Shown here: piece after piece, positions 4,201 to 49,866 of the stretch | Numbering within the stretch: the stretch's first letter is position 1 | How the letters are laid out: each line of letters begins with the position of its first letter | Source of the DNA: Thalia democratica | Taxonomy: Eukaryota | DNA length: 64,000 nt | Assembly: GCA_965202585.1 (NCBI GenBank) | Contig: OZ241826.1 | Span: 36,456,001 to 36,520,000 of the forward strand | Direction: 5' to 3' | Program-made: the position numbers and the translations under genes | The notes under the pieces: generated by a model | Database searches by the model: none | Seen by the model: the letters and a program-made list of their open reading frames with translations, nothing else | Told to the model about the DNA's origin: nothing

Positions 4201-4705
4201 ACAATAGAAAACTAGCATGTAAAAACTTTTTAACAAATAAAACTTTTTAATTTAGTTTTTTTTTTATGGTAAAAATGCAGAGTTTAAACAAATTTTATTT
4301 TTAATCAAAGATTACTTAGTTCTAATCATGCCACTATAGTATGCTAAAATACTCAGACTCTAGAAGTAAAATTTGAATACTATTTTGTAAATGAAAGAAA
4401 AAGACCAAAATGTCCAACTTAGTCAGAGCATAAGTTTTTTAATATAACTTGTTAGTTTTCAGTAGTGAAAATAGTTTCAATAAACTGAGTAGGACAAAAA
4501 ATCAGTTGAGAATAAAAATTAACAAATTTACAAATAGTTTAAAAGATTTCAGAAAACGCTAAGTTTAATAAATAATACATTAAAAAGTAGTGCACTGTAT
4601 TTTTTTATTAAAGTAATAGTTATTTTAGTTTTAATTTTATAGAGGCTTAATTAAAAATTTAAATTCACAATTAAGTAATACTAAATACAACAAATTATAG
4701 AAAAA
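1226..4705. repeat. Tandem array of three ~1.16-kb units
   Basis: The unit start AACTTT(G/A)TGTTTTA recurs at 1226, 2381 and 3551 (periods 1155 and 1170), and internal landmarks are colinear (CCTCGTGCAA, GATAAAGATGCGAA, TTTTGAACCCCGTCAT, ATACTCAGACTCT). Units 2 and 3 look more alike than either does to unit 1. Confidence 0.95.
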
Positions 4706-4788
4706 GGTAAAAGAAAAACAAAATAAATAAAACAAGGCATAAAATCAAAAAGTTTATGCATATTTACGAAACTAAACGAATAGAATGG

Positions 4789-4828
4789 ACGCTTAGAAGC
4801 AGAAGCGTTAAAAATTATCTAAATCTAG
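4789..4828 (+). mobile_element. Helitron-like 3' end, imperfect
   Basis: Hairpin ACGCTT-N8-AAGCGT followed by CTAG at 4825-4828. The next base is C rather than the canonical T. Shares sequence with the end at 6909-6956. Confidence 0.3.
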
Positions 4829-5664
4829 CTGTTTTTTACTACTTATTTAAAAAGTTAGAAGCTTTAATGATGGCTATGAGTAATTCACCAAAAGCTGCTC
4901 AACCATAAAATATTAAGTTAAAACGAGCAAATGTTTAATCAGAGTTTTTTTTTATTGAAATTCTGACAACCCTATGTAACCCCATGGTTGTTGTAATACT
5001 GGAGAAGCTTAAACTTTTCGTAACTAAACAAAAACTTAACAAAAGATATTTTATAAGTAATATGCACAACAACTTCACTATGGTTCTTCTATTGTAATAA
5101 AAAGACAAACACATTAAATAAATTAGTGTCACAAAACCATATTAGGTTTAGCTAATTACTTAGGAAATTTACCTCGAAACGAATCTGACTTAACTTAACT
5201 ATCCGCTACATTTTACTTTTTTAAAAGATTTAAACTAGTTTTTATACATGAGGGTACAAACTACAAAGTTAGATAGCTCAATCCTGTGGAAGGACCAAAA
5301 AAATTAAAAAAAAACAATCACATCAAAAATATATCTTCTCCCACTTTTTTAATATCTGTTCCAATGCTTTCTCAGTTTATCTTAACTAAACACTAAACAT
5401 TTCTAATGTAAGATGTTTTAAAAACGTTAGTAAAGTTTTTTTTTCTATAATTTGTTTTTGGTCATAAATTCTTGTTTTCTTTTTAATTTTTACAACATAA
5501 TATTTAATATTGATGTACATGAAATTTCTTTAAAATTTAAAGTTTAAATTTAAAAATTAAGATTCGGATCTTGATTCGGCTGAATTCTGATTTTAAATTA
5601 AGACTCGAATTTGAAATCGGTGGAATTTAAAGTCTTTGGATTCGGTAGATCACTAGTAGATATA

Positions 5665-14629: not shown

Positions 14630-14870
14630 ATTCATTTTATCTAGTGTTAAAACAGTTAAGAGAACTTAAAACATGTTATACTCGTAAAGAAATGCATCAG
14701 GAAGGTTTAAGAAAAAAATCATAAATATCAAAGAAGTTAATCTGACTAAATTATTCAACGAAACTGCAAAGCTTCTAACTATTATGTTATAAATACCGAT
14801 GTGCAGTAGTGAAGCTGAAAGAACATTTCCAACTTTTATAATAATAAAACATGTTTAAGAAAAAACATAG
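14630..14870 (+). pseudogene. hAT transposase C-terminal dimerisation-domain remnant
   Basis: IPMCSSEAERTFPTF-type motif (ATACCGATGTGCAGTAGTGAAGCTGAAAGAACATTTCC), shared with 34145-34190. Confidence 0.75.
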
Positions 14871-20800: not shown

Positions 20801-21146
20801 ATAAATCTTAAACTATCACTTTTATTCATAGATTCTTCATATAGTTTTTCTATGTTTTAAAATATTTTCGAAGTCTTTTTTGAGTTTTTGAAATAGTTGT
20901 GGTCATTGTGCAAACAATGATAGAATTTTTTATTTTGAATGGAATAAAAATTAGCAGGACCAGTCTTCACCTTAGAGGTCGAATAGTATAATGAATATTA
21001 TTGTCATTACAATTTTGAAGCCGGGCAGAGCTATACATGATTTTTTTAAGTTGTCGCTTTTGATAGGTTGTCACTTATAGATTAATGTTTTGTTTAAATA
21101 AACTTGTCTTTCATCTGCTTAAATTCTTAGTTCAGATTAAAGGTTT

Positions 21147-21396
21147 CCGGTACACCATGGGAGAGTGGTTCCTCAATCACGTAATCCTGAAAATGAGTAC
21201 TTACGGTGGGCCCTTACAGAAAACCGAAGAATTAATATAATCTTACATCATCGTGACAAGCGAGCGCGGTAATAGCAATAAAAATCAACACATAAATAAC
21301 AGTAAAACCGAGAATAGCTAACAATTAGGCGTATGACATTGCACTATCATTTGACCTGCCACTCAAAAGAGCGAGAGCCTGGTATATATAACCGAG
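21147..21396. other. 250-bp insertion flanked by a 7-bp direct repeat (AAGGTTT)
   Basis: AAGGTTT at 21140-21146 and 21397-21403. The paralogous unit has the empty site AAAGGTTAGCAG at ~23482. A near-identical copy lies at 46783-47032. Confidence 0.85.
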
Positions 21397-22750
21397 AAGG
21401 TTTGCAGTAATTCTGTACCGCTTGTCTTTAAATATAATTTTTAAATGTGGTAGTTGAAATTACTACCTTTACTTGTCTGTTGATTGCGCGTATGTTTTTT
21501 CATTTATTACTACCAACTTAACCTTAAAATTTATTTTACTAACAGGGTTTATAAAAGGCTCATCTACTGAGTAATTAAAAAAGTCGTCTGAAAATATCTG
21601 ATCATATAAAGAGTTAACATAGTTATTATTGTATTTATTATCAACAATACTTAATTCAAGATTGCCAGCAGAAAAATCAAAAATACCTTGATTTTTAAAC
21701 ATTTCTTTGAAGTTAAGAAGTTGTAGGTTATTTAATTGACATTTCAAGTTCTTCAATTAATTTTAAAGGTCTAAGCAATTGATTATAAAGGAACTGCTTT
21801 ATTTTGCTTCATCGTCTAGCATTTGCAGTGTTTTAATGCCATGGCCTGTAACTAAATCATTACTGCTACAATTAATTTCGTCACTAACACCTTTATTCAT
21901 TGCACAATAAAAGATTTTAAAAATATTATAAAAAGTCTTATAAATTCTAGTAATTGAAAATAATTATGGTCATTGTGCAATCAATGATAGAATGTTTTAT
22001 ATATCTTTAGATATAACGGTAGGTCGAGACTTCACCTTAAGGGTTGAATAGTACAATGATTTTTTTGATAGCCTGATCTAAGCATTTCCTTTTACTCCAA
22101 GTTTCTTTCTCAAAATTGGTGCTCTTCATTTAATTTTCTCAGTTTTTAAAATTAGTTCTTATAATTTCTTGTTTGAAACTACTTTTCTTTCACGTATACG
22201 TGAAATATATGTATTTCTTGGAACTGGAATGACTGTTATTAAGCAAGACTCTTTTTTAATGCAAACAACAGTTAAATTTTCCAACATTAGCAATTGCATA
22301 ATATGCGTATCTGAACTGACAAAGGAACTTAAAGAAAATTCGTAAATTTTTCTGTTGCTGTTGGTATTTTTACGGCTAATGTTGCTGGAATGAAATTTTT
22401 CATGAAAGACTCTTTTAGAACTTCCAGTTTTTATTCTAAATAGCCTTACTTTGAACAACTCGTCTTTGAAGGTTCTCAAGATCGGTTGAAAATGCTTAAG
22501 GTGGATTGCTGTGAGATTTAACTTTTATGTTACTTCACTTTAAACTTCATTCAAACAAATACAACTTTTAATTATTGAACTTTTTGCTAATAGTTGCTGT
22601 GGTCATTGTGATTGCAGTTGCAAAACTTGAAGGAGACCAGTCGCGTACATCTCTTGTAGTTTTTCCACATTTTCAAACTTTCTACCTTGAACATTTAGAA
22701 CAGAATTCTGAACTGTATATACTAAAGTTTTCATTTTCTCTATAACTTAA

Positions 22751-23340
22751 TACTTTATTGGTTATATGCGTCTCATTTGCAAATAACTTCATAAAAAATT
22801 CTAACCACCATTTTATTGATAGGGTAGAGTGATCTGCCAATATGGCGTTACATATGAAAATCTTGAGGAAATGTTCTGGAAGAAGAATCTTTTGTGCTAC
22901 CTAAGGAAACTGAGTAACAAAATGTCCGTCTGTCAATAAACTTATGACTGTTGTATTTGTTTCTAACTAACATCAGGGTAACTTGATAATAACGTATCAA
23001 CGCCATTATTCGCACGTGTGATAACGTAATCATGAGCGTCAACGAACCAACCTATAAAGTCCTCTCGTGTCTGCCCTTCGATGCTTGAAACACCTATTCC
23101 TCTCAAATTATTTTCAAACTGGGTCATATATCGCCCGTTACTGGCCGCCAACATTCTAGCATTTTCAGACGCTTCAATCACCCTGCGCGCAACGGTGCCT
23201 ACATAATCGGCCCATCTTCTAACCCCGTCAGTCATGTAAGTTGTAACTTGACTCATTTTCCAATAATACTGTCAGTGAAGTCTAGGCATTTTTAATGAAA
23301 ATAATAATAAAACAACTTCATAAAGATACCTGCATTCTTA
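22751..23340 (-). pseudogene. Fragment of a diverged Mutator/NOF-like transposase core, interrupted by an insert
   Basis: Minus-strand pieces YEVVLLLFSLKMPRLH, KFIDRRTFCYSVSLGSTKDSSSRTFPQ and CNAILADHSTLSIKWWLEFFMK align by eye with the 27.0-27.2 kb and 54.8-55.1 kb copies (YDVIKKEIEVEKCPNLH...KYTDKREFYYSIAL...DKTSSRTC.Q...CEAILADHTTLSIKSWLEFF). Confidence 0.65.
22963..23256 (-). CDS. 97-aa ORF of unknown function occupying an apparent insertion
   Basis: Uninterrupted ATG-to-TAG frame, visibly more GC-rich than its flanks, with no stops although the surrounding sequence is heavily decayed. No family recognised. Confidence 0.45.
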   Translation of the reverse strand: MSQVTTYMTDGVRRWADYVGTVARRVIEASENARMLAASNGRYMTQFENNLRGIGVSSIEGQTREDFIGWFVDAHDYVITRANNGVDTLLSSYPDVS

Positions 23341-26300
23341 ATTGCAGTACAATTTTGAAGCCGGGCAGACTATACATGATTTTTTTTGAATGTTGTCGCT
23401 ATTTACAGGTAGTTACTTTATAGATTAATGTTTTGTTTATATAAACTTGTTTTTTGTCTGCTCGAACTCTTAGTTCAGAGTAAAGGTTAGCAGTCATTCT
23501 GTACCGTTGGTCTTTAAATATATTTTTTAAATGTGACTGTTGAAATTACTACCTTTTCTGTTGATTGCGCGTACGTTTTTCATTTATTACTACCAACTTA
23601 ACCTTTAAATTTCTTTTTTTAACAGGGTTTATAAAAGGCTCATCTACTGAAGAATTAAAAAGGTCGTCTGAAAATATCTGATCATATAATGAGTTAACAT
23701 AGTTTTTATTGTATTCATTATCAACAATACTTAATTCAAGATTGCCAGCAGAAAAATAAAAAATACCTTGACTTTTAAACATTTCTTTGAAATTGAGAAG
23801 TTGTAGGTTATTTAATTGACATTTCAAGTTCTTCAATTGATTTTAAAGGTCTAAGCTTTTGATTATTAAGGAACTGCTTTATTTTCCTATTTTGCTTCAT
23901 CATCTAGCAATTGCAGTGTTTTAATGCCATGGCCTGTAACTAAGTCATTACTGCTACAATTAATTTCGTAACTATCACCTTTATTCATTGCACCATGATA
24001 GATTTAATAAAATTTTTATAAGTTTAAGAATTTTTAAAATAGTTATGGTCGTTGTGCAACCAATGATACAATGTTTTATTTATCTTTGGATATAACTTGG
24101 TAGGTCGAATCTTCACCTTAAGGGTTGAATAGTACAATGATTTTTTTTAACACCCTGATCTAAGAATTTCCTTTTACTCCAAGTTTCTTTCTCAAAATTG
24201 GAGCTCTTCATTTAATTTTCTCAGTTTTAAAAATTAGTTCTTATAATTTCTTGTTTTAAAACAACTTTTCTTTCACGTATACGTGAAATATATATATTTC
24301 TTGCAACTGGAATGACTGTTATTAAGCAAGACTCTTTTTTAATGCAAACAACAATTAAGTTTTGCAAAATTAGCAATTGCATTATATGCGTATCTGAACT
24401 GACAAAGGAACTTAAAGAAAATTCGTAAATTTTTCTGTTGCTGTTGTTATTCACACAGCTAATGTTGCTAGAATGACAGTTATTAAGACTCTTTCAGAAC
24501 TTCCAGTTTTTATTCTAAAGAGCCTTACTTTGAACAACTCGTCTTTGAAGGTTCTCAAGATTTGAAAATGCTAAAGGTGGATTGCTGTGAGATTTAATTT
24601 TTATGTTACTTCACTTAAATTAACTAAAAGTAATTTTTAATTCAAACAAATACAACTTTTAATTATTGAACCTTTTGCTAATAGTTGCTGTGGTCATTGT
24701 GATTGCAGTTGCAAAACTTGAAGGAGACCAGTCGCGTACATCTCTTGCCGTTTTTCCACATTTTCAAACTTTCTACCTTGAACACTTGGAACTGTATATA
24801 CTAAAGTTTTTCATTTTCTCTTCAACTCAAAACTAATGTTTGATCAGGAACAAATTATTTTAAAAACAAAATTTTGAACTTGTCTTTGATCAATTCCCCA
24901 AGTGCCGTCATACTTTTCATGTATTACTGGTTACAGTTATAATATCACAGTTTAATATTTTTCTTTTATCTTCTCGTCACTTGATATTTTTTAAGGACAG
25001 TAGTGTGTTCCACTTACTAAATTTGAACTTAGTTATTTCTTCAACACCAAAGTTTTTCTCTTTACTTTACAACTTAAAAAACTAGATTTAAAACTCGTTG
25101 TACAGAGGAGTAAAACCTGTCATTTTTTTGTCTGGAAAAAAATTTTTGAAAAGAGAACGGTGCTGTTGTTACAATTAACTAGTTTTTATTTCAGCAAGTT
25201 CATCACGCAACTACTTAAATTTTTCAAAGTGCCATTATGGCAGTACTGAGTTCCAGCAACTTAATTTGAATGTCTTCTGAATAACTTCTTAAATACCAAA
25301 AATACTGCATAAGTTTTCATTTTACTGTACAATTTAAAAAGCAAGAATCAAAACTAGCATCTGTTTAGATTATTTTTTCTAAAACAAATTTGAACGAAAT
25401 GTTGTTCGGTTCCGACATTGAACTGACGTATGCAGTAGTCTTTGTAGTGACTTTCTTTAGTTTTTAAACCTAAAGAACATTCTAATTTTATTTATCTTAT
25501 TCTCATACTGATTGATCTTCTTATTCATCATCGTTCAATTATAATACTTAAAAAATTCAAAGATACCTTGTATGCTATGTTTTTTAAAAAACTGTTTAAG
25601 AAATAAATATCATTAATTATGAGATGTTTCTATCAACAACTTTATTGATTTTTCCTAACAATTTTTTTTTCCTGCTGAGGGTGTTAACTATTCTTTGTGA
25701 TTTTAATAATCATCGTGGCATTCTACCACGATTGATCTTAAACTTGCCTTTGTACTTTTCTTGTTTGCACTGGATAATATCACAGTTATTTATTTTTCTC
25801 TCAACAAACTTACACTTCTTTTCACACAGTAACAAAAACAACGCGGCCTTAATTATCCTGTGATCTAACTAAAATTCTATAACTACCCGAGTTTAATCTT
25901 TTTAAACATTAGAGGCAGTGGTCCAAACAGTAGTGACTAACCTAGGGTTTTCTTTGCCAGACAAAGAACTTTCATAGTAATCGGGAAATCGATTTTGAGG
26001 ATCAGCCAACCTATACATAGGGGTATAATGATGAATATTAATTTTCAGAGCTTTAGAGGCACAAAAAGCAGTTAACCTGCAAGAATAACTAAGACAGCCG
26101 TACGTTTTGCATAGTCTTGCGATTCAATTTTCTAAAGACATATCTAAGTAGTGTTGGATACATTGTAACAGGATATGTACGTAGTTTTTATCATGATATA
26201 ATTATTAAGTATTTTAACGTAATCCAACACTGTTGTGTTTATTACCAAATAATAAGAGAGTCGATGAGTGAAAGAAATTTGAGCTATCAGCAAAGGACTT

Positions 26301-26539
26301 AGCTAAATGAGTAAACTTCAACTCGGAATTCACATTTAATTCTTTGAAATTTAAATCAATTCTATTATTTAAACTTGATAGTTCTAAACTAATAATAAAT
26401 CATCTGTACATTCAAAACACACTTTTAAAGTCATTACAAGCTTCAAATAATTTCTTTCATCTGTTCGAATTCTTAGTTCAGAGTAAAGTTTTTCAGTTAT
26501 TCTGTATCGTTTATCTTTCAATATATTATTTTTAATGAT

Positions 26540-32599: not shown

Positions 32600-34260
32600 A
32601 GAGAAAGTTCAACAAAAATTATTACTCCGAGCACCAATGGCTTTGCAGCTGCTCAGAAACAAAATCTTTATTTCGATTCTCATTTTTGCTCATTAGGAAG
32701 AAGGCACTTGGAATAAAATTAACTTCAAGAGCATTTCAACATATCTGTTGACGTTCAGAAAAACAGAAGAAAAAAGTCAAAAACTATATTGGGTATTCCT
32801 TATGCAGTTTGCAAGAGATTGCACTAAAAGGAATAATGAAAAAAACTCACCAAATCCATGTTGTTTCAGACCTTTGCTAAACTTTGCAGGTATTCTAGAT
32901 AAAAATATTGGAGACTACTTGGAAAACTGTAAATTGTTTACAAGAAATTTAGCTACAATACAAAATAAAATACTTGAATGTGTTTTTCAAATTTATATAA
33001 AACAAATTTGTTGCTCAAGTCAGGGAAGGACCTTTCATAGTTATAATTGCTGATGAAACCACAGAAGTTTCTTTCAAAAATCAATTATCATAAGTCATCA
33101 CATATATATACAACTGCAAAGTTGTATAAAGATTTTTTGGATTTTTCCAGCCAGACACAGAATCAATGTAGATGGAATAGCAAATGCTATTATAACAGAG
33201 CTAGAAAAAAAATTGAAATTAGATAAAAAGAAATTAGTTGCGAAGACTTATGATGGTGCTTTAGTCAATCGGGAAAGGATTGAAGGGTAGCATGTAAAAG
33301 TAAACCAAGTATATGAAAATGCTTACTATGTTCACTTTGCTACTCATCAGATTAATTTAGTTCTTTCAAAAGCTGCTAGCTGCAACAAATGTTTTTTGCA
33401 TAGCTAGATCAAATTCCTTCTTTTTTTCATATTCGCCAGAAAGAAGACGTGTTGTAAAAGTGAATATTTCTTCTGGGAGCAGAACTAGGTAGAACTACAC
33501 TTCAAAAATTGTTCTCAGAAATTCAATCAATAAATAGTAATTGTTTACTGGATTTAGTTTTATTATAGGTAACCCAGACCGTTTTCGTTTTTACAGAAAA
33601 GTGGCATCAGAAAACTGCATAAAGACTTCAAATGATTGTAATTTTGATTTTTGGCTGAATTATTTTCAGAAATTATGTCTGCAGCTGAAAACCTGTATAG
33701 TGTCATGCAATGCACAGACTTAACTGTTTAAAAATTTGAACAGCACTTGGAAACTTTTCAAGCTGTAGTCAACAGTGTAAGAAATTCAAGTAGTACAGAC
33801 AATGTTTGAAAAAGCTTTTCTTCTTCAACAATAAAAGTCTGTGAAAGTGTCAGTTTCAATAGTACTAAAAAATTTAAGTTTTTATAGCTTTAAAGAATTT
33901 CACATTTGTTTTTTAGCAAATATTTTACTGTTTATAAGTTTTGTTTACCTTTAAAACTTAAAAAACGGTGAAGAAGTGTTATTCTGTAGTTGAGTGTAAA
34001 TACTTAGAAAGAGAACTGAAAACATTTTATTCACGTATAGAAATGCATCAGGATGGTTTAGTGAAAATACTGTTATATCTTATGGAATTTAACATGACTA
34101 AATTATTTAACGAAAATGCAAAGCTTCAAAGCATTATTATATCAATACCGATGTGCAGTAGTGAAGCTGAAAGAACATTTCCAAATTTTAAAATAATAAA
34201 ACACTTTTAAGAAAAAACATAGGTCAGTCAAGGTTAAATTCTTTAAGTGTAATTTCCAAT
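32600..34260 (+). pseudogene. Degenerate hAT transposase (ZMYM1/DUF4371-type)
   Basis: Motifs in the correct order with stops and frameshifts: NPCCFRPLLNFA...LENCKLF...IQNKILEC (32748-33053), ADETTEVS (33050), KTYDGA (33245), YVHFATHQINLVLSKAA (33325, CxxH region), TR*NY (33485, TRWN) and IPMCSSEAERTF (34145). Confidence 0.88.
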
Positions 34261-37200
34261 GGTAGGGACTTAATTAAATGTATGGTATTTTCAGGCTAAC
34301 TTTTATACTTAAATGTTCAGTATTTAGTTTTTCTGAAAGTCTCAAGTTTCATTTTCATTATAATAACTTCTAAATACTAATTTTGTTGAAGACTTGTGAT
34401 ATTTAGTTTTTGTAAATTTAATTTCTGGCCTTCATATAGTCGTTTTTTCACTTGAATAAATGAACTGGACAAATATAAGTTTATTTTAAAGTAAAGTTCA
34501 GGCGGTTGTAGTTATTTTATAAATTAACTTTAACTATAAAGAACATATACTCGATTGTACAATTAACAACAGGTCTGCAAAATTTGAATTGTTTTTATAG
34601 AAAAATTGTTTGTGGTAGAGCTTTTTTTTTTGTTTAGTTTAACTGTGTCCAGTGAAATGCAGTTTAGGCTTACATTAACAGTTTAAGTTTATTATATTTT
34701 AATTATCTTTTTATGTAAAAGGAATTCTTAGAAAAACAAAAAACTAAAACAACAAATTAAAAAAGTACTCGATGTAGGTTAAAAGTAGACTCTTAATTAC
34801 AAACTTTTTTTTTCACATTGATAATTTTGTGGTTTAAGAATGTTTAGAAAACTATAAATCAATTTAAATATGATAAAACCGCACAAGTATATAAAAAATA
34901 CACACTTTTGACGATATTGTAGTGTTTAAACGCCTTCTTTGTTTAATATCGTTCCAATTTAAAATCGACTTTAATGTTTAAAAAAAGTTATTCCCAGTAT
35001 AAGTGCAGGAACAAAGCTAGTGGTTGGAATTGGTAACATTTTAAAACTTGGATCATCAAGCGTTTTGTAATTTAAAAAAAATCAAGCATTTAAGTATTAT
35101 TTTAGTATTAAAACCACATCCAACCAGCTTCATTTGTAATGGTCCTACCATATAGAAAAGTCAAAAGACACTAATTTAATTACAAAGAAACAAAATAAAA
35201 ATAAATTTTTAGCAGAAAACATTATCTTTAAAACCGTGAAGTTTAGAAATAATACAAACAATACCTTACAAATATAGAAACATAAATTAAAAAAAAAAAA
35301 TTTACATCAAGCTGTATAAAATTTATTTTTTTTACAAAACTCTAAAAGTTTATAATCTCTAAAAGTTTATAATCTCTAAGTTACTTGTGTAAAAAGCTTT
35401 AAGAAAACATTTTAGCACGAAATTTTAGTAGTTTAGTCGTAGAAATTTAGTTTTACCTTGCTTAAAGAAAAAGTAAATTTTTTGTCAGCAACTAAGTAGT
35501 ACTAATCGTAAGTTAATCATATCTGTGTCATTTTTAATATTAATTTATAATTTTTTTTTTGACAAATCATCGATTACTTATTTTAAACTGCTATTATTTT
35601 CTATTACTAAGACTCTTTCATTCTCAGATTAAATAAAAATTCTATTTTACAAAGGCACTAGCTTAACGTTAACTATTAAATTGTCAACTGTTAAGAAAAA
35701 AAAAGAAATATATTTTTACTCTAATCTACAAGGAATTGTAGGTATGGTTATAGTGTACATTAAAGCTACACTATAACACAGAACAAGTAAATAATACCAT
35801 TAACGTAAATGATACTTAGGGCTACTCTATGTAAAACAAGGCATGACAATGAATGTTAATATTGGATTAAAGAACCATGAAAACAACAAAAATAATTTAA
35901 AATTTTACTTTAGTATGTTTTAAATAAATGGAGTTAAAACCTTTAAACACGATTAAATGTAAAAGAAGATACTTTAAGAAATGTATAAAATAATATTATA
36001 TTTGTTTACTTGGAATTTATATCAAAAAAACTACTTGAATGAAATGCCGTTGTTTAAAAAATAATTTTACAATAAGCAACAAATAATACAAATGTATACA
36101 TGTTAGCAGCAGCAAGGTGAATGAATACCTGCTCCAAATGATGAGAGTTTATATATGGCTGTAAAACTAACATTTATTCAACGATTGTCACTTTATTTAG
36201 CTGAAACTGTTTCTCTTTAACGATTTTAGAGCTTTTTAAGTAACAATGTAACATGGCTGTAATATGGAATGCAAACTTGCATCAGTAAACTCGTGACTGC
36301 TCTATACTTTTTTCTTATCCAAACTTTATCAAACTTGCATCAGTATTTTCATCCGTTTCTTTCTGGGATTTGTTTCTGGGACAAAACGGTTTCAAATACA
36401 ACTTAAGGTACATTACATCACGATAGAAAAAAAACGAATTAATAGTTTATTGCAACAAAAAAAAATCAAAATAATTAAGTTATGATTAAAGCTGGCTGAA
36501 AACTGTAATTAGAAGTATTTTCAAATTATATGATAGTTTGTTACTAAAACTGCTCGGTAGCACTGAGTTAGTCTGAAACAGTTTTTTTTTAATTTAAAAA
36601 ACCAGCACACTATAAGCTAAAACGAAGTGTAATTAGAACTAAAAGAAAAATTGTAATTCAAAATTTAATATAGTTTATGTAAAATGTCACAGTTATAAAA
36701 AATACCGCTGGTAAATAATAACAATATTTTTATTATCTTAATACTTACATATCTTTGCATCAAAATGTATATATAAAGTATTTAATTTTAGTGAATTTTT
36801 TTTTTTATTCAACTAGAGTACTGTAATATATAATTTTCAGTCAGTAGTAGCACCTAATTAAGTATAATAGTTTAGTAAAGTATTTAAAAAGTTTTAGTTT
36901 CAAATAATAATTAATGATAAAGCATTTTTGGTAAAGTACTTTATTGCTTCCATGCCCATTAATAAACTTTTAGTTACTTTTTCTAAATTACTAAAACTAA
37001 GCTTTAATTTTTTCTTACCTTTTTTAATAATACTACAATACTTTGTTAAAAAGTGTTTAGTTAACTGATTTAAGATACTAAGCTAAGGTAAACTGATTAA
37101 AATAAGAGTACCGTTAACAAGTATAAAATTGTTTTTATTTATTTTGAGATCATAAAGTAAGGCATGAGTTTTCTATTTTATAATACTAAAGCTTACATAA

Positions 37201-38952
37201 TAACAAACACAATGGTTTTACATAAAGAAACAAGCAGAAAAGTAGAATATTTTTTACAAAAATTGTTTCATAGACTCTATTTCTACTTATTAAATATTTC
37301 TTGTGTTAATTTTACCTTTGCTATTGCAAAAAATTGATTACAAAATTGTTAAAACACTTTGTAATAAAGAGTTATTTTGTTTTATTTGAAATACACTAAA
37401 TATGTTTTGCTTCTTTTTAGAAACAAAGTATATTTTAAAAAGTACGGTTTAAGTTTAAATATTATTGAATTGATAAAAAAAAGTGTTTGATGTTTGTTTA
37501 AAAAGAATCCTTTTATTTTGACAATTTTAAACTCAATGTTTTACGTAAAACCTGTAATTCGATTTTTTATTTATTGTGATTTAGATACAAATTAAGAGTT
37601 AAGTTAATGCAAATCATATATTAATAAGAGATGCAACATTTTAAAAATATAATTCTAGTTAAAATAAATTAGTAAAATTATCAGAGCAAGCCTTGAAAAT
37701 AAATATTAATATTTAAGTTAATAAACAATGAGTATCAATAAAACATGTCTGCTTATTTTCCCCATGAAAGTCTCTGAAATTTAAAGTATATTATTAAATT
37801 AAGACATTTTGTTACAAGTAACAAAGTTGGCGCTCAATTTTTAAAAGTGAAATTTAAAAAGAAACTTTTATTAATACGTCATAATACAAAAGCGCTTTTT
37901 TGTTCACATATTTGCTCAGTAATTTTATTTGTTAACTGCAGCCATTGAAAGTACAGAAACTACTTCTCTTACTATAGTCAAGTTTGGCATTTATTATTAC
38001 AAATATCAAGATTTGTTTTTAAATTCAAAAGGCTCATTGTATCAAATAGCTCTACCAGTAATTTAGTGTCTAATTAATAAAAGTTTCCTCTGGCTGAAAA
38101 CTTTTATTCATCTTTTATGTTCATTTAAAACTTGAATGAATAATTTGAAAAGGTATTCGCTTTATTTCAGGTTTATAGTCTCTTACTGATTAATTATCAA
38201 ACTTTATGTATTAGGCTTACAGGCAAATTAATAAAAAATAACAAAAAGTGTACAAGCTTTTCAATTTAGCTCATTATTATTGCTTGTTGGCACAGTAAGT
38301 TTTGTGCAATTTTTTGTAGATTACTAACTCAAGATATTACAAAAACCTGCATTTCTTAACATTCCAACCTCAGCAACTTTTGATCTATGCACTTCTACTA
38401 CTGTTGCTTTAAATCCTAATATGTCAATAGTGTGGTTATTTTACCTTAATGATTAAGTTTACAGGCGTTTTTTATTGGCCAAACTAGTTTTGTCTGAAGA
38501 TGGTCAACTGTAAACTAATCAAAACTGATTTTTTTTTAGTATTTTCAAGAGACCATTGGGTCAGCAGTGTCAGTTAAATTTCTTGCAAGTTATTAAACAA
38601 CCTGTCAACTTATTGCTACTTTATTTAAACTTATAAAGTCAAAAAGTATACAAATCTTGCTTTCAATTTCTTCTTGTAACTTCAACTGATTGATTATCTA
38701 CTTATAAAAACGTCTAATCTAAATTATTTTCTAAACATCAAGTTTTATTACTGCAAAATTCTCCTGAATTATTTATTAAGTGCTTATAGATGTTAAGGTC
38801 CTATTTATGTAGTTTTTAGCTCTTAATTCATTGTGTATTTACACTTTGTATGTTTGTAAACTATCTTTTCAAATATTTCAGTGATATCATCATTGAAACA
38901 TTTTAAAGAATCACATGTTACTAATTTTTTTATCTTTTTACTTAAATCAGAG

Positions 38953-40139
38953 ACGTTTCTATAGTTAGCGTCATATTTGCATCCTTATATTCATATTTAT
39001 ATCCTAGGGCACTAAACCTTTAATTGAGGTTGTTTAGTTTTAATACTTTATATATGTGTTCTTCTAAGTCGTCTTAACCTTAACTTGAAATTAAAACAAA
39101 GACATTTCTGACGTCATAATCGACACTTAAAGACGAAAAACCCGTAAAAACCGTCTAGTTACGTATACCCTAGGGCACCAAACCTTAAATTGAGGTTGAA
39201 TAGTTTTAATACTTTATATATGTGTTCTTCTAAGTCGTCTTAACCTTAACTTGAAATTAAAAAAAAAAACATTTTTGACGTCATAATCGACACTTAAAGA
39301 CGAAAAACCCGTAAAAACCGTCTAGTTACGTATACCCTAGGGCACCAAACTTTGAATTGAGGTTGAATAGTTTTAATACTTTATATATGTGTTCTTGTAA
39401 GTCGTCTAAACCTTAACTTAAAATTAAAATTTAAAAAAAATATTTCTGACGCTATAATTGACACTTGAAGACGAAAAACCCGTAAAAACCGTCTAGTTAC
39501 GTATACCCTAGGGCACCAAACCTTAAATTGAGGTTGTATAGTTTTAATACTTTATATATGTGTTCTTGTAAGTCGTCTGAACCTTAACTTGAAATTAAAA
39601 TAAAAAAAAAAATATTTCTGACGCTATAATTGACACTTGAAGACGAAAAACCCGTAAAAACCGTCTAGTTACGTATACCCTAGGGCACCAAACCTTAAAT
39701 TGAGGTTGTATAGTTTTTATACTTCATATATGTGTTCTTGTAAGTCGTCTAAACCTTAGCTTGAAATTTAAAATTAAAAAAAAAAATTTCTGACGTCATA
39801 ATCGACACTTGAAGACGAAAAACCCGTATTAACCGTCTAGTTACGTATACCCTAGGGCACCAAACCTTAAATTGAGGTTGTATAGTTTTAATACTTCATA
39901 TATGTGTTCTTGTAAGTCGTCTGAACCTTAACTTGAAATTAAAAATAAAAACATTTCTGACGTCATAATCGACACTTGAAGACGAAAAACCCGTATTAAC
40001 CGTCTATTTACATATACCCTAGGGCACCAAACCTTAAATTGAGGTTGTATAGTTTTAATACTTCATATATGTGTTCTTGTAAGTCGTCTGAACCTTAGCT
40101 TGAAATTAAAATTTAAAAAAAAAACATTTTTGACGTCAT
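38953..40139 (+). repeat. Left inverted arm: ~50-bp terminal segment plus seven ~165-172-bp units (last one partial)
   Basis: CCTAGGGCAC recurs at about 39004, 39168, 39337, 39507, 39679, 39851 and 40018. Unit length varies mainly with a poly(A) tract. Confidence 0.95.
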
Positions 40140-40281
40140 TAAAATAGATTAAACTAATATTTTACTGTTCAAAAATAATAATACTAGTTTTTGTAGTAGA
40201 ATAACAAAAGATACTAATGATGTTATAATTTATTTAACAATATAATATTTAACAATTTTTACAATATTTAACAATTTAATT

Positions 40282-42560
40282 TTATTGTTCATTGGTAGCT
40301 ATATATTTGCAATAACGGCAATAGTATTTTTGAGATTTTAGAACATTGTAAGTCTTGTCCGTCATCTTCAGGCAGCTTTTATGGTACCATTTATTACAGT
40401 TGTCGCAGCCTAACTGTAATAAAGTGGTATACTGTTTAGTTCAAATATATTTAAAATCGTAACTACTTGAAAGTTTTTATTAAATTTACAAACATTTGAT
40501 TTAAATAAAAATCTAACCCATTTTATTTTTTCATTCTCATCTAGGTTCTGTCTTTGAAGCTTAATTGGTTGGTACCATTGGCAAGTGTTACATGCATTCA
40601 CCTTTACAACTGTAGAGTATTTTATTTAAATATTTACTTAATAGTTTAAACATAATATCTTAATACTTTCTTAATTTATCTCTGTGTCAATAAATATTAG
40701 AAAACTTTGTAAAAATCAGTTTTACCTCCATCCCTAATCAAACTCGTCGCTATATATAATCTTTTTAAATGATTTTCCTGACAATCTGTTATTATCTTTA
40801 TTTTTTTTGGGAAAACTGGATACTTCGATAGTATTTGCTCTGCAGCCTGAAAAGTAATACTAATATGAACAATTTAATGATATAGGATACCTATAGTTTT
40901 TATTGTTTTTATACACTAAAATAAATTTTTTTTTTACCTCGATGACATGTAGTCCGCAGCTATTATGATCTTTTTGTCGGTTGTGGGTTATTCTTATAAC
41001 TTTTAACCGTCTAACTTTTTTTAACAACTCACTATTTCTTTTTACCTGTTGCCTAAATTGTAAAAAAAGTGTTACTCATATTTAAAAAAAATATATATTA
41101 ACGTAACGAAATGAAATTAAGTTTTGAAAAAAAAAACATTCTATAATTATGGCTAATAATGTACTAACTTAATGTTATCTACAAACTTTTTGCCTTCATC
41201 TTCTTCTTCATATTGGTTATGGAAGGCATCAAATATATACACATTCTTTTCGATAATAAACTAAAAATTTATTTAAGTTACGCTTATTCTAGAAATTTAA
41301 CTATAAATATTTATTTTTCTATTGAAAACAATTAGATTATTAATATTATTACACAAAGCTTATATTTAAATATTATTCGAACTAACTACATCTCATAAAA
41401 ACTGTCTTTAACTACTTACTTAAAGCTACTGTAGGTAACTTTTACAGTTAAATGCACAATGACTTACTATCAATTAAAGTGCAAAACTCTGTGGTTTAAA
41501 GCACTTAAATACGAGTAACAATCATGATCTACATTTAAAATCTATTAATTCAGACTACAACTAAACTTCTTGACTTTTACAACAAAACATTGTATCAAAA
41601 ATACTTTAAAAATTTTGATAAGTTTTATAAAACGCTTTGCACTACATGAATTATCAAGATTTTACGTAACAAATAAAATAAAGCTAACAAATCCTTTCCA
41701 ATGGTTAGGGTGTTTTTGATGGATAAAACTAACGACTGATTTAGCATTTAAAATCTAAATAATGTATAAAGGTTACAAAATACAGTTTAAACCTTATTAT
41801 ATATTAAATAATAACTTACTTTATCAAGGACGGTCTTATCTACTCGTTCACCATTATTTATCATTCCAGTATACTTGTGTTCTAAATATTCTACACTTTT
41901 AAATCTGGTTGTATTTAAAAGTAAAAACATATACCCACGAATTACCTGTGTTAATTACATAAAGTTAATAAATAAACCTACTTAAAATTGATGTTATATA
42001 AGCAACTTACATTTCCATCTAACTCATTACTTAATGTAAATATGTCGTCAAAAGTTATGCCCATCCAATCTCTAGTACTTTCTTTTCGTATAATTGTAAC
42101 CGGTCCGAATACGTCTTCTGATCCATGTTTCCAAATGTAATCAACCTTTTACGAATTTTAATTAATTTTTTTATATCTCAAACAATAAAAAATAGTATAA
42201 AATTGAATGCTTACTAGGTCCTCAGGTTGTTGAATTGTGTTATTTTCCCACTGTAAAATGTTTTTAATGTTCATATCAAATTGTTAGTCTACAAACTATA
42301 AATATAACTTACAATTGGTTCTTTATCCCATTCTTTTTTTCCCTCTGGGTAAACAATAACATCATTTGATCTTCTTTTTAACTTAAGCTTTTCTGTTATT
42401 TTTGAAGCACTTGGTATCTGAGAATAATTAAAACACATTTTGAAACGAGACTTAGATTAACCAAATAATTAGACAATGCAAAAAAACATAAGTCTAAGTT
42501 ATAAATCCAAAAGTTATAAACTTACGTTAGTTCCGGTACGATTTTCAGCAGGGACAGATT
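40282..42560 (-). CDS. Spliced Ulp1/SENP-like (peptidase C48) cysteine protease with C-terminal PHD finger; 5' end not resolved
   Basis: Eleven exons, all GT-AG, phase-consistent and stop-free: 42526-42560, 42313-42417, 42215-42250, 42011-42145, 41820-41945, 41689-41754, 41169-41260, 40938-41052, 40726-40846, 40518-40609, 40282-40413 (1,055 nt, ~350 codons). Motifs: FTLSNELDGN|VIRGYMFLL (like WLNDEVINFYM), NHWKGF|FIIEKNVYIFDAF (His 41701-41703, Asp 41228-41230), QKDHNSCGLHV (Gln, and Cys 40956-40958), then CNTC...W|LGCDNCNKWYHKSC...YYCRYC (C4HC3). Confidence 0.9.
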
Positions 42561-43828
42561 CTAAGAAAAAAAACAGTCAAAACCTTTTAATATATAGAGT
42601 AGAAATAGCTAAAAATATTCGCTGACCTTTATGTACAAAGTTAAATGTTTTCACTCGAGTTAGTTTAGTTATAATAAAACATTATACAATTACGGGATTT
42701 TTTACAATTTTAACAACGGTACAATGGAGCATATCGGAGCATACTATTTAATTAAAGTTTAGTTTATTTATTGAACTGCTTTAGGAAATTCGAATTTCTA
42801 AACAAATTTTTCTGTAGAGATGGTGTTTATATGGATGTTCTTAATTTTAAAATAGTCATTAATTCAACTTGATTTCTAGTTGTAATGTTTTGTAATGGTT
42901 GTAACTTGATTAAAATGATTTTGCAGTATTCAATATTTAACTAAATGGTAAAAAATAAAACTGATATTACATTACATTGCCACATGTTTAGGAAATCAAA
43001 TTACATTCTTCTGTTTTGATCTAGTAGAAGTCTACAATATAAAAAAAAAGATTAATTTTATACAGTGCACCTTTTTTAAACAAATACCATATATGATTAA
43101 TAAATAAAAGGCCTGAGTTGTATTAAATTTACGTAATTAAGTCTAAAAGATAAAATTCTGTTGTCATATAAATACTTATGAAAAATAATAAACATTTCTA
43201 GCATAAATCAAGCATATAAATTTGAAAACTAAGTCAGCAAAAATAAATTATTTTTGTTTTTTTAAATTTTAACTATAAAAACGTATTTATTTTTTATTAT
43301 TTTTCAATTAGTTTCAGTGACGTAGATTAGGAATAAGGATAAAAATGAGTAAAAAAATAACTGAACCTATAAAAATAATTCTTGACTCAGCAAATCAGGC
43401 TGAGTATTATCTACATTTTACTTATTGAGGTATAATCTAATATAAAACATCAACACCATTTTAAATGTTTGTATACGTTATTCAGCGCTTTTTATATGTA
43501 ATGTACAGAATATTTTTTATTTCTATTTAAACACCAACAAACACACCATATAAATGCTGAAATAGAAGTTTTATTGTAGTATAAATAAATTTAAGATAAA
43601 AACATGCAACTCTAATACAAAGTAACATTCATGTATTTAAAAACTTTGAGGAGAGACTTAAAACTAATGTTTTTTATATTTAAAATAACCACGACTTAAC
43701 AATGTTAAAAGTTGGTTACGCAAATGTGCAATGATAAAAACACCAATGTTTAGTAAAAATTAGTATAAAGTTGATTAAACTCATGGAAAAGACCGTGATA
43801 TGCGACACGATAACCAAAAGGTTCGCCG

Positions 43829-45082
43829 TACGTAACTAGACGGTCAATACGGGTTTTTCGTCTTCAAGTGTCGATTATGACGTCAGAAATGTTTTTTTTT
43901 AATTTTTAAATTCAAGTTAAGGTTCAGACGACTTACAAGAACACATATATAAAGTATTAAAACTATACAACCTCAATTTAAGGTTTGGTGCCCTAGGGTA
44001 TACGTAACTAGACGGTTAATACGGGTTTTTCGTCTTTAAGTGTCGATTATGACGTCAGAAATGTTTTTTTTTTAAATTTTAATTTCAAGTTAAGGTTCAG
44101 ACGACTTACAAGAACACATATATGAAGTATTAAAACTATACAACCTCAATTTAAGGTTTGGTGCCCTAGGGTATACGTAACTAGACGGTTAATACGGGTT
44201 TTTCGTCTTCAAGTGTCGATTATGACGTCAGAAATTCTTTTTTTTAATTTTAATTTCAAGTTAAGGTTTAGACGACTTACAAGAACACATATATGAAGTA
44301 TTAAAACTATACAACCTCAATTTAAGGTTTGGTGCCCTAGGCTATACGTAACTAGACGGTTAATACGGGTTTTTCGTCTTTAAGTGTCGATTATGACGTC
44401 AGAAATGTTTTTTTTTAAATTTTAATTTCAAGTTAAGGTTCAGACGACTTACAAGAACACATATATGAAGTATTAAAACTATACAACCTCAATTTAAGGT
44501 TTGGTGCCCTAGGCTATACGTAACTAGACGGTTAATACGGGTTTTTCGTCTTCAAGTGTCGATTATGACGTCAGAAATACTTTTTTTTTAAATTTTAATT
44601 TCAAGTCAAGGTTCAGACGACTTACAAGAACACATATATAAAGTATTAAAACTATACAACCTCAATTTAAGGTTTGGTGCCCTAGGCTATACGTAACTAG
44701 ACGGTTAATACGGGTTTTTCGTCTTTAAGTGTCGATTATGACGTCAGAAATGTTTTTTTTTAAATTTTAATTTCAAGTTAAGGTTCAGACGACTTACAAG
44801 AACACATATATGAAGTATTAAAACTATACAACCTCAATTTAAGGTTTGGTGCCCTAGGGTATACGTAACTAGACGGTTAATACGGGTTTTTCGTCTTCAA
44901 GTGTCGATTATGACGTCAGAAATGTTTTTTTTTTTTTAATTTTAATTTCAAGTTAAGGTTAAGACGACTTAGAAGAACACATATATAAAGTATTAAAACT
45001 AAACAACCTCAATTAAGGTTTGGTGCCCTAGGATATAAATATGAATATAAGGATGCAAATATGACGCTAACTATAGAAACGT
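43829..45082 (-). repeat. Right inverted arm: seven ~172-bp units plus terminal segment
   Basis: GTGCCCTAGG recurs at about 43989, 44161, 44333, 44504, 44676, 44849 and 45024, as the reverse complement of the left-arm unit. Confidence 0.95.
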
Positions 45083-46782
45083 AAATCAGAGCTATCCACA
45101 CTACTTGAAATATTTCCCTGTGAGTGGGTAAAACAAAAAATACAGTGCTGAAAGGAAAGGATTTTTTAATTCCATTAAATATTAAATTTTCCTGATCAGA
45201 GTAAAGCAATAACTTATTTTTATAAGTATCTTTACAGTTTATTTGAACTGTAATCATGCTTATTGTGTGGAATAACTATTAGGTTAATAGTATTGTAATT
45301 CAATGAAGTCTTGAAAACAATAGTTTTTTTTGTCTTGAACTAGTTTACTGTATGGCTCATGGTATACTTAATTTTTATTTTTTGTACACCAGACCATAGT
45401 GAAGTCTTCAAAACTATTTCTCTATATTCTTAAAAACCTTTGAACCAAAATATAACTAATTTTACTGAGTGTCTCCTAACATTTTACATGCCATTTAAAT
45501 AAGCAATAAAATGTTTTGAGATATTACCTTACATCCCACCAAGTTTTTACAGACTATAAAATTAAATTAATTTTTATTTAACATATACCACTGCAAAGCC
45601 TCAGCAGCACCAAAGGTCTTTTGTAAAGTTGATGGAAAAGATATTTGAATCAAAGTTAAGCTTAAGTTGATAAGGCTAGATCTTAAGATGGTACTTTTTA
45701 AATGTCTAATAATTTAAAGAGTAAACAAGGTTTTTTTAATTTACTACTATCTGCCACCAACTGAATATATGAATTTATAATTTCATGATCAAACCATCTG
45801 GAAGCTTCAGGCTTTTAATACTTTTTAATCACAATTCTAAATTAATAGACTCAACAAATAGCTGGTACCTAGAAATAAAAAAGAAATGATTTATGAAACC
45901 CCTAGAAGTTTGGACGTGGATTAGTCTTTCTTCTACCCGTATGGTTCGGCTTATAAGCCGGACACATGAGCCAAGCAGGATATAATTCCCTTTTATCCGT
46001 GGATTGTACAAATTGCCTTCCATCTTTAAGTACCACATATTTGCTTAAAGTGGACTTCTTTGTCTTTTTAGCAGGGACCTCTGGGATAGCAATGTCATTG
46101 CACTTATTTAAAAAGTGACTTGAAAAACTATCTAGTTATTGGCTATTTAATTTGATAAGCCTGATAATGAGGAAACTTAAAATCACCTTTCCCCTTAAAT
46201 GACTTCCTAACATTAATAAATTGATTTTCAATTAAACACCTTTAGTTCAGTTACCAAATCCGTTGGACTCACATATAATCTTCCAACTAAACTGTTATTA
46301 AAAGATTCAGCCAATTTTGGCAGGGACCGCTGGGAAAGCAATGTTCTAGAACCCTTTTACCCAAAATACTTGGGAACCAAAGACATCTACTCTATTAGTA
46401 TTTGCTAAAATACCTTTGCCTTACAATTACCATAGAATAAATTTTAAACTATCACTTTTATTCATAGATTCTTCATATAGTTTTTCTATGTTTTAAAATA
46501 TTTTCGAAGTCTTTTTTGAGTTTTTGAAATAGTTGTGGTCATTGTGCAAACAATGATAGAATTTTTTATTTTGAATGGAATAAAAATTAGCAGGACCAGT
46601 CTTCACCTTAGAGGTCGAATAGTATAATGAATATTATTGTCAGTACAATTTTGAAGCCGGGCAGAGCTATACATGATTTTTTTAAGTTGTCGCTTTTGAT
46701 AGGTTGTCACTTATAGATTAATGTTTTGTTTTAATAAACGTGTCTTTCATCTGCTTAAATTCTTAGTTCAGATTAAAGGTTT

Positions 46783-47032
46783 CCGGTACACCATGGGAGA
46801 GTGGTTCCTCAATCACGTAATCCTGAAAATGAGTACTTACGGTGGGCCCTTACAGTAAACCGAAGAATTAATATAATCTTACATCATCGTGACAAGCGAG
46901 CGCGGTTATAGCAATAAAAATCAACACATAAATAACAGTAAAACCGAGAATAGCTAACAATTAGGCGTATGACATTGCACTATCATTTGACCTGCCACTC
47001 AAAAGAGCGAGAGCCTGGTATATATAACCGAG
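46783..47032. other. Second copy of the 250-bp AAGGTTT-flanked insertion
   Basis: Differs from 21147-21396 by about two substitutions and has the same flanking direct repeats. Confidence 0.85.
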
Positions 47033-49866
47033 AAGGTTTGCAGTAATTCTGTACCGCTTGTCTTTAAATCTAATTTTTAAATGTGGTAGTTGAAATTACT
47101 ACCTTTACTTGTCTGTTGATTGCGCGTATGTTTTTTCATTTATTACTACCAACTTAACCTTAAAATTTATTTTACTAACAGGGTTTATAAAAGGCTCGTC
47201 TACTGAGTAATTAAAAAAGTCGTCTGAAAATATCTGATCATATAAAGAGTTAACATAGTTATTATAGTATTCACTAACAACAATACTTAATTCAAGATTG
47301 CCAGCAGAAAAATCAAAAATACCTTGACTTTTAAACATTTCTTTGAAATTAAGAAGTTGTAGGTTATTTAATTAACATTTCAAGTTCTTCATATAATTCT
47401 AAAGGTCTAAGCAATTGATTGTTAAAGAACTGCTTTATTTTCCTATTTTGCTTCATCATCTAGCAATTGCAGTGTTTTAATGCAATGGCCTGTAACTAAG
47501 TCATTACTGCTACAATTAATTTCGTCACTATCACCTTTATTCATTGCACCATGATAGATTTAATAATATTATAAAATGTTTTTATAAGTTCAAGAATTTT
47601 TATAATAATTATGGTCATTGTGCAACCAATGATACAATGTTTTATTTATCTTTGGATATAACTTGGTAGGTCGAATCTTCACCTTAAGGGTTGAATAGTA
47701 CAATGAATTTTTAACACCCTGATCAAAGAATTTCCTTTTACTCCCAAGTTTCTTTCGCAAAATTGGAGCTCTTCTTTTAATTTTCTCAGTTTTAAAATTA
47801 CTTCTTATAATTTCTTGTCTTGAAACTACTTTTCTTTCACGTATACGTGAAATATATGTATTTCTTGGAACTGTAATGACTGTTATTAAGCAAGACTCTT
47901 TTTTAATGCAAACAACAGTTAAATTTTCCAACATTAGCAATTGTATTACATGCGTATCTGAACTGACAAAGGAACTTAAAGAAAATTCGTAAATTTTTCT
48001 GTTGCTGCTGTTATTCACACGGCTAATGTTGCTGGAATGACATTTTTCAAGAAAGACTCTTTTAGAACTTCCAGTTTTTATTCTAAATAGCCTTACTTTG
48101 AACAACTCGTCTTTGAAGGTTCTCAAGATTGGCAAAAAATGCTTAAGGTGGATTACTGTGAGATTTAATTTTTATGTTACTTCACTTTAAACTTCATTCA
48201 AACAAATACAACTTTTAATTATTGAACTTTTTGCTAATAGTTGCTGTGGTCATTGTGATTGCAGTTGTAAAACTTAAAGGAGACCAGTCGCGTACATCTC
48301 TTGCCGTTTTTCTACATTTTAAAACTTTCTACCTTGAACATTTAGAACAGAATTCTGAACTGTATATACTAAAGTTTTCATTTTCTCTATAACTTAAAAC
48401 TAATGTTTGATCAGGAGCAAATTATTTTAAAAACAAAATTTTGAACTTGTCTTTGATCTAACCTCCAAGTGCTGTCATACTTTTCATCTATTACTGGCTT
48501 ACAGTTATAATATCACAGTTTATTATTTTTCTTATATCTTAATATTTCTAAAGGACAGTAGTGTGTTTCACTACTTAATTTGATCTTAATTATTTCTTCA
48601 ATACCAAAGTTTTTCTCTTTACTCTACAACTTAAAAAAATAGATTTAAAACTCGTTGTACAGAGGAGTAAAACCTGTCATTTTTTTGTGTCTTGAAAATA
48701 AAATTTGAAAAGAGAACGGTGCTGTTATCACAGTTTACTAGTTTTTATTTCAGCAAGTTCATCTCCCCGCTACTTAATATTTTCAAAGTGGCGTTATGGC
48801 AGTACTAAGTTCCATCAACTTAATTTGAATGTCTTCTCAACTACTTCTTAAATACCAAAAATACTGCATAAGTTTTCATTTTACTCTACAATTTAAAAAG
48901 CAAGAATTAAAACTAGCATTTGTAAAGATTCTGTTTTCTAAAACAAGTTTGGACGAAATGTTGTTCGGTTCTGACATTGAACTGAATTTGAACTGACGTA
49001 TGCAGTAGTCTTTGTACTGACTTTCTTTAGTTTTTTAATCCTAAAGAACATTCTGCTTTTATTTATCTTATTCTCATACTGCTTGATCTTCTTATTTATC
49101 ATCGTTCAACTATAATACTTAAAAAAATCATACTTACCTTGTATCCAATGTTTTTTAAAGAACTGTTTAAGAAATGCATATTTTCAATTTTGAGATGTTT
49201 TCTATCAACAACTATATTGATTTTTCCTAACAGTTTTTTATCCTGCTGAGGATGTCAACTATTTTTTGTGATTTTAATAATCATCGTGGCATTCTACCAC
49301 GATTGATCTTAAACTTTGCCTTTGTACTTTTCTTGTTTGTAGAGAGAGTCAATATCACATTTATTTATTTTTCTTTCACCAAACTCACTTCCTTTCGATT
49401 CGTATTGCCAAAAAAAGAATTTTTATAATAATCAGGAAATCGATTTTGAGGATCGGCTAACCCATGTATAGGGGGATGAATATTTATTTCCAGAGCCTTA
49501 GAGGCGCAAAAAGCAGTTAATCTTCAAGAATAACTAAGACAGCCGTAAGTTTTAGATAGTCTTTCAATACAGTTTTCTAAGCACATATTTAGATAGTGTT
49601 ATAAGATACATTGTAACAGGATATGTACGTAGCTTTTTTTGACGTAATCATAAAATATTTTAACGCTATCCAATACTGTCGTGTTTATTACCTAATAATA
49701 AGAGAGTCATTGAGTGAAAGAAACATCTATCCTGATAAGAGCTATCAGCAAAGCACTTATAAGCTAAATCAGTAAACTTTGAGTAAATCAACAACAGACA
49801 GTTGGGATTCACATTTAATTTTGATATTTGAAACAATTTTATTATCAAAACCTCTTAGTTCTAAAC

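Follow-up and report, generated by a model that had tools for sequence, protein, structure and literature searches.

How does a spliced gene for a putative SUMO-protease-like enzyme come to lie between the arms of a transposon that has no transposase, and what might it do there? The question is raised by a 64,000-nt stretch of the genome of Thalia democratica (GCA_965202585.1, contig OZ241826.1, forward-strand positions 36,456,001 to 36,520,000; hereafter the window, to which all coordinates refer). An element in this window carries on its minus strand a multi-exon gene, the predicted product of which joins an Ulp1-like domain (peptidase family C48) to a C-terminal PHD finger. A first-pass annotation, made from the letters alone, had proposed a transposon-borne anti-silencing module. 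We consider it likely that the element is a non-autonomous Mutator/Foldback DNA transposon that carries an Ulp1-PHD accessory module.

The element is a real and fairly young transposase-less DNA transposon of the Foldback/Mutator type. It spans 38953-45082, is flanked on both sides by a perfect 9-bp target-site duplication (TSD), and its outer 45 nt are fully complementary to each other. An empty site with contiguous flanks and a single AAACCAGAG is present in the same window within a paralogous ~10-kb duplicated block, one copy of which surrounds the element (34009-38952 plus 45083-49866), while the other lies at 14658-26389; the empty site is a paralogue and not an allele. Because the flanks in that other block copy are contiguous, the insertion must be younger than the block duplication. 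Thus, the perfect TSD, the exact termini and the empty site claimed in the first-pass annotation were all recovered, the last of them in the paralogous block. The structural features are:

38944-38952 (no strand): left TSD AAATCAGAG, identical with 45083-45091
38953-38997 (plus): left unique terminus, 45 nt, beginning with ACGTTTCTATAG, 100% reverse-complementary to 45038-45082
38998-40139 (plus): left arm, 6.7 tandem units of ~167-172 bp (Tandem Repeats Finder, TRF: period 167, 92% matches)
42561-43828 (no strand): internal non-coding region with no recognisable transposase; family copies diverge at 42742/42743
43829-45037 (minus): right arm, 7.0 tandem units of ~172 bp (TRF: 96% matches)
45038-45082 (minus): right unique terminus, 45 nt, mate of 38953-38997
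45083-45091 (no strand): right TSD AAATCAGAG, identical with 38944-38952
19449-19457 (no strand): paralogous empty site AAACCAGAG, flanks contiguous, one TSD copy and no insertion

The arms are about 1.15-1.2 kb long each, and the inverted-repeat pairs formed by left and right arm are 91-98% complementary; alignment of the 14 arm units gave a mean column identity of 92%. Every unit starts with a near-invariant palindromic core, CCTAGG, and a further palindrome, TGACGTCA, which we take to be a CRE/ATF-type site, is found in 12 of the 14 units (five of seven on the left and all seven on the right, 39109-40138 and 43878-44918). It occurs 13 times in the window versus an expectation of 0.33. Both cores may be protein-binding sites, and the arrays behind the 45-nt termini probably offer a series of binding sites to a Mutator-type transposase that is provided in trans.

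Composite terminal inverted repeats (TIRs) built of tandem repeats, together with 9-bp TSDs, are a published hallmark of Mutator/Foldback elements (PMC3169594). The TSD found here, 9 bp, falls into the 9-11 bp range of this group, and the 45-nt termini followed by inverted arrays of ~170-bp units constitute long, composite TIRs. Foldback, Tm1 and Phantom elements (Drosophila FB, Meloidogyne Tm1; PMC3169594) share the arms of tandem sub-repeats, the short unique ends and the 9-bp TSD, and most of their copies are without a transposase, as is this one. Their sub-repeats of 10-31 bp are, however, much shorter than the ~170 bp observed here, the likeness noted here being one of architecture, and an Ulp1-PHD cargo sets the present element apart from them.

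It should be noted that the two copies of the duplicated block are not equally similar on the two sides of the insertion. A comparison of 36953-38952 plus 45083-47091 with 17400-21500 gave an identity of ~88-94% to the left and ~97-100% to the right, and the change coincides precisely with the point of insertion. A gene-conversion tract may have halted at the foldback insertion, or a rearrangement may have one of its ends at the element.

The only gene of the element lies on the minus strand. In its longest form it consists of 11 segments with GT-AG borders throughout and compatible phases, which together comprise 356 codons and end with TAA at 40284-40282. This form has no start codon. Its first exon (42560-42526) begins in phase 1, and when exons with an ATG were sought further upstream, none could be joined convincingly to the phase-1 acceptor at 42560. 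An alternative 10-exon model begins at an in-frame ATG at 42438 (with A at -3), just upstream of the second-exon acceptor (42417) used by the 11-exon model, and yields a complete open reading frame (ORF) of 352 amino acids. An AATAAA motif follows 3' of the ORF at 40234-40229. The splicing is credible because the catalytic residues His159, Asp174 and Gln220/Cys226, like both parts of the zinc finger, are encoded on separate exons and fit only when these are joined, and because the G+C content of the exons (32%) exceeds that of the introns (20%). The consistent splice phases noted in the first-pass annotation were confirmed, and its description of the gene as intact can be defended, but for the 10-exon model only and with a provisional 5' end, as the 11-exon frame lacks a start codon. 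The parts of the gene, from the 3' end, are:

40140-40281 (minus): 3' untranslated stretch, with AATAAA at 40234-40229
40282-40431 (minus): last exon, with most of the PHD finger (CDNC..H..C...CRYC; Pfam PF00628) and TAA at 40284-40282
40518-40609 (minus): exon with the first Cys-x2-Cys of the PHD finger (C279, C282); GT-AG, phase-compatible
40726-40846 (minus): exon that encodes the C-terminal helices of the protease-like domain; GT-AG, phase-compatible
40938-41052 (minus): Cys exon with Gln220 (40976-40974), Cys226 (40958-40956) and the motif RQKDHNSCG; matched in the Atlas and by the first hidden Markov model (HMM)
41169-41260 (minus): exon with the catalytic Asp174 (41230-41228), motif IFDAF, aligned by both HMMs with the Asp of YYDS
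41689-41754 (minus): exon with the catalytic His159 (41703-41701), motif NHW; aligned by the first HMM
41820-41945 (minus): exon for the N-terminal half of the protease-like domain; GT-AG, phase 0
42011-42145 (minus): exon that precedes the protease-like domain and extends into it; GT-AG, phase-compatible
42215-42250 (minus): short exon of 12 codons; GT-AG, phase-compatible
42313-42438 (minus): exon with which the 10-exon model starts, with its ATG at 42438-42436; acceptor of the 11-exon model at 42417
42526-42560 (minus): optional upstream exon of the 11-exon model, phase 1, no ATG; GT-AG

The stop codon at 40282-40284 varies in the family: it is TAA here versus TTA (Leu) in most family contigs, in which the next stop follows two codons further on.

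The four residues H159, D174, Q220 and C226 are present in the order and spacing of the C48 family, in agreement with the His-Asp-Cys triad and oxyanion Gln of the first-pass annotation. An HMM was built from a Pfam-verified Peptidase_C48 ORF of a giant-virus contig (PF02902, E 2.4e-39) and 57 related PF02902 proteins. Against this first HMM the spliced model scored 11.5 bits, rank 2 of 2001 sequences that included 2000 shuffles, and its His, Trp, Asp, Gln, Cys and Gly fell into the catalytic columns; His, Asp, Gln and Cys were in register in only 1 of 20,000 shuffles. When the Cys exon of 38 amino acids was compared with the ESM Atlas, the best match was 0.95 with 185 shared features, and Peptidase_C48 (PF02902) clusters made up 73 of 100 matches; the Atlas was uninformative for exons 4 and 5, at 42011-42145 and 41820-41945. 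Judged from these motifs, this is very probably a clan CE/C48-like protease that has diverged but retains every catalytic residue. A mixed profile of exon pieces and the SENP1 protein was also tried, which was dropped because MAFFT scattered the pieces, and a profile search to broaden the C48 set returned only further SENP1-like proteins.

The second domain passed a curated threshold. The last exon matches the Pfam PHD family PF00628 with an E-value of 2.1e-9 (37.7 bits versus a cut-off of 24), and the ligands C279, C282, C312, C315, H320, C323, C341 and C344 form the C4HC3 pattern that had been recognised in the first pass.

Is the element really devoid of a transposase, and is it a member of a family? 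The ten open frames in the remaining 1.27 kb of the interior gave no Pfam match of any kind, and no long frame was found there, which agrees with the initial view that no such domain is present. The 3.7-kb interior was found in 338-405 short contigs with 90-100% identity in each of three genome-like runs. These comprise ~0.97-1.0 Gb of contigs each, and the cover is even across introns and exons, as in genomic DNA. Because exons, introns and the non-coding part are all covered, it is the whole interior that is multi-copy, and not the gene alone; the number of distinguishable interior variants is on the order of ten or more. In all three runs, some contigs coming from both sides diverge into unrelated sequence at 42742/42743, ~180 nt further upstream than the start of the 11-exon model, so that some family copies hold an insertion or another segment at this point. 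It may be the site where the transposase part was lost.

The combination of domains has been seen in animal transposons before. According to Repbase Reports 2008/2009, cited in PMC2836005, Ulp1 domains are present in hydra and lancelet Mutator transposons, and Fig. 1e of PMC2836005 aligns the Ulp1 plus PHD domains of Mutator and Ginger1 transposases of Hydra. MULE-MuDR (Mutator-like) elements are among the putatively active families in Hydra (PMC12220107). To judge from their description in PMC2836005, the MuDR-type elements of Hydra magnipapillata and lancelet (Bao and Jurka) resemble the present one in being animal DNA transposons with a Mutator-type TSD length and Ulp1-like plus PHD domains, and they differ in that the module is part of the transposase, whereas here it forms a stand-alone ORF between long foldback arms, with no transposase domain. 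Ginger1-9_HM (PMC2836005) likewise unites Ulp1 and PHD in one Hydra transposon protein encoded with introns, but it has an integrase-type transposase, a TSD other than 9 bp and TIRs of 44-270 bp, and belongs to a different superfamily.

As the same module has been described at the C-terminus of Mutator/Ginger1 transposases of Hydra, the element would most simply be a derivative of, or a partner to, an autonomous MULE-Ulp1-PHD element, with a transposase that was lost or never present. It would have been inserted by cut-and-paste transposition into one copy of the duplicated block, creating the 9-bp duplication, and its sole gene, with 10 or 11 exons, would code for a cysteine isopeptidase of the Ulp1-like type that ends in a PHD finger. 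Were this protein produced, its PHD finger would direct it to the tails of histone H3, where its protease domain would free chromatin or repair proteins in the vicinity from SUMO or a modifier related to it. The benefit for the element could be help with transposition or repair, in line with the suggestion of Bao et al. that such proteases assist in these processes (PMC2836005), or relief from SUMO-dependent silencing.

Several results weigh against this explanation. With a second HMM, derived from a full-length alignment, the spliced model scored -0.7 bits, no better than shuffles, and only the Asp strand was aligned; hhalign of the single sequence gave a weak result. Pfam searches with nine single exons revealed the PHD domain and no C48 match, phmmer searches of the PDB with exons 8 and 4 retrieved nothing relevant, a phmmer search with exon 4 had 0 matches among 1.84 billion representatives, and a word-based search with the 71-aa exon-8 frame gave no candidates. 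Of the single exons, none reached the curated threshold for C48. The Ulp1/C48 call of the first-pass annotation is thus backed by the first HMM and by the Atlas matches of the Cys exon, but not by single-exon Pfam and PDB searches or the second HMM. In addition, the assignment to the superfamily rests on TSD length and arm architecture, since no Mutator transposase with matching termini was seen in this window. Lastly, variation among the copies is nearly neutral, and a search for RNA-Seq runs that hold the interior had none listed.

The last two points bear on the possibility that the gene is a decaying relic, that is, that the ORF is open merely because this copy is young, and that the gene is unexpressed or non-functional in a family of non-autonomous passengers. 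The exon changes among copies comprise 8 synonymous versus 19 non-synonymous ones, including one nonsense and one stop-loss change, the latter being the majority state that adds two residues. The ratio of non-synonymous to synonymous polymorphism (pN/pS) is ~0.56 for these 27 changes and is not distinguishable from neutral, and the exon/intron ratio of substitution density is ~0.64 (p 0.19). An estimate of dN/dS had been suggested at the outset; in this comparison among copies, no clear purifying selection was seen. A nonsense variant (E to stop at 41206) and a 1-nt deletion at 40327 occur in other copies, the 11-exon frame has no start codon, and no RNA run was listed. Against decay speak the depletion of indels in exons (1 of 8 versus ~58% expected, p 0.011, although the introns are richer in homopolymer runs), the 0 listed changes at His, Asp, Gln, Cys or zinc ligands, and the complete ATG-to-stop ORF with its poly(A) signal. 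As decay after insertion is expected even for a functional transposon gene, near-neutral variation among copies is compatible with selection on master copies. The copy variation neither shows nor excludes constraint, and we regard a relic as possible but doubtful. It is quite unlikely that the gene is a recent capture of a host Ulp1-PHD gene, taken up as DNA with its introns in the manner of Pack-MULEs and unrelated to the transposase-linked Ulp1. The 9-10 short introns in ~1 kb of coding sequence are indeed host-gene-like, the Ginger1 transposases having 0-4 introns (PMC2836005), and TIR elements of animals do capture sequences at the DNA level (PMC8277862). However, no parental gene was found, the search with exon 4 among the 1.84 billion representatives being empty, the entire interior including introns and non-coding sequence is repeated along with the gene, and the same domain pair is already known from the Mutator/Ginger1 transposases of Hydra.

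The anti-silencing module of the first-pass annotation goes further than an accessory role. Silencing by piRNAs (PIWI-interacting RNAs) and SETDB1 depends on SUMO. A PHD-targeted deSUMOylase might lift the SUMO-dependent silencing by H3K9me3 (trimethylated lysine 9 of histone H3) and piRNAs of its own family, by analogy with the VANC and VANC-Ulp1 proteins of plants. In favour of this idea, the present copy has a full catalytic constellation and a whole PHD finger, and the family seems to consist mainly of cargo-bearing elements, as the read depth at the arm edge (~4,100-5,200 versus ~300-1,650 inside) roughly matches 14 units per element. Yet the three genome-like runs contain no transcripts or splice junctions and no intron-matching joints, and the 8 synonymous versus 19 non-synonymous changes, with a nonsense variant among them, do not indicate clear purifying selection. 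The PHD motif GCDNCNKWYH, which by eye we presume to be of the H3K4me3-reading type, would direct the protein to active rather than to silent chromatin and therefore also argues against this role. The VANDAL MULEs of plants possess genes for VANC proteins, anti-silencing factors through which their own family is demethylated (PMC13317346, PMC5735166), and some VANC genes carry an Ulp1 domain, the role of which is unknown in plants (PMC13317346). This is a plant precedent. All in all, an anti-silencing function is unlikely. The most far-reaching version, in which an animal family has split Ulp1-PHD from its transposase and spreads a stand-alone, chromatin-targeted deSUMOylase that shields the family from SUMO-dependent heterochromatin and piRNA silencing, has to be called a long shot.

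What is new about the element is limited. The first-pass annotation knew of no description of such an architecture; the Ulp1/PHD module has been published for Mutator and Ginger1 (PMC2836005), while a stand-alone Ulp1-PHD gene within foldback arms is a modest novelty. Because plant MULEs have VANC genes that carry Ulp1 (PMC13317346), the anti-silencing idea has a precedent and is not new in kind. Arabidopsis KAONASHI (KI-MULE) and the VANDAL elements with VANC-Ulp1 genes (Hoen et al. 2006; Sasaki et al. 2022, via PMC13317346) are also MULEs with an ULP-like gene. As far as they are described there, however, these plant elements are of the non-TIR type, their Ulp1 is joined to VANC, and they have neither a PHD finger nor foldback arms. 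The VANC system of VANDAL elements has experimentally supported anti-silencing activity, which acts on non-coding repeats of the same family (PMC5735166). The transfer of this known plant concept to animals is reasonable, and, if it were true, a family with a stand-alone deSUMOylase would be an animal counterpart of VANC/KAONASHI anti-silencing.

We know of no study that has shown the role of Ulp1-like domains in transposons. As a sequence feature, the element is unexceptional, a non-autonomous transposon that belongs to a type of family known from Hydra catalogues. Ulp1-like domains recur across unrelated transposon superfamilies, Mutator and Ginger (PMC2836005), and a copy in which the module alone lies between mobile ends is a convenient natural construct for asking whether it acts on SUMO, aids transposition or counters silencing.

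The remaining observations concern the surroundings of the element. An Rfam scan of the window gave no match, and the base composition is ~26% G+C. The duplicated block (14658-26389 and 34009-49866) is large and contains internal repeats; a further correspondence is that of 47033-49396 with 23483-25823. It holds related open frames that have no Pfam match, for example 22159-22479, 24227-24454 and 47590-48135. An ATG-started frame of 97 amino acids on the minus strand (22963-23256) has residues unlike its AT-rich surroundings, and its sole Pfam match, to B1, is below the threshold (E 0.0016). On the plus strand, a frame of 80 amino acids at 33968-34210 weakly resembles, below the threshold, the C-terminal dimerisation domain of hAT (E 0.007) and is probably a hAT remnant within the duplicated block.

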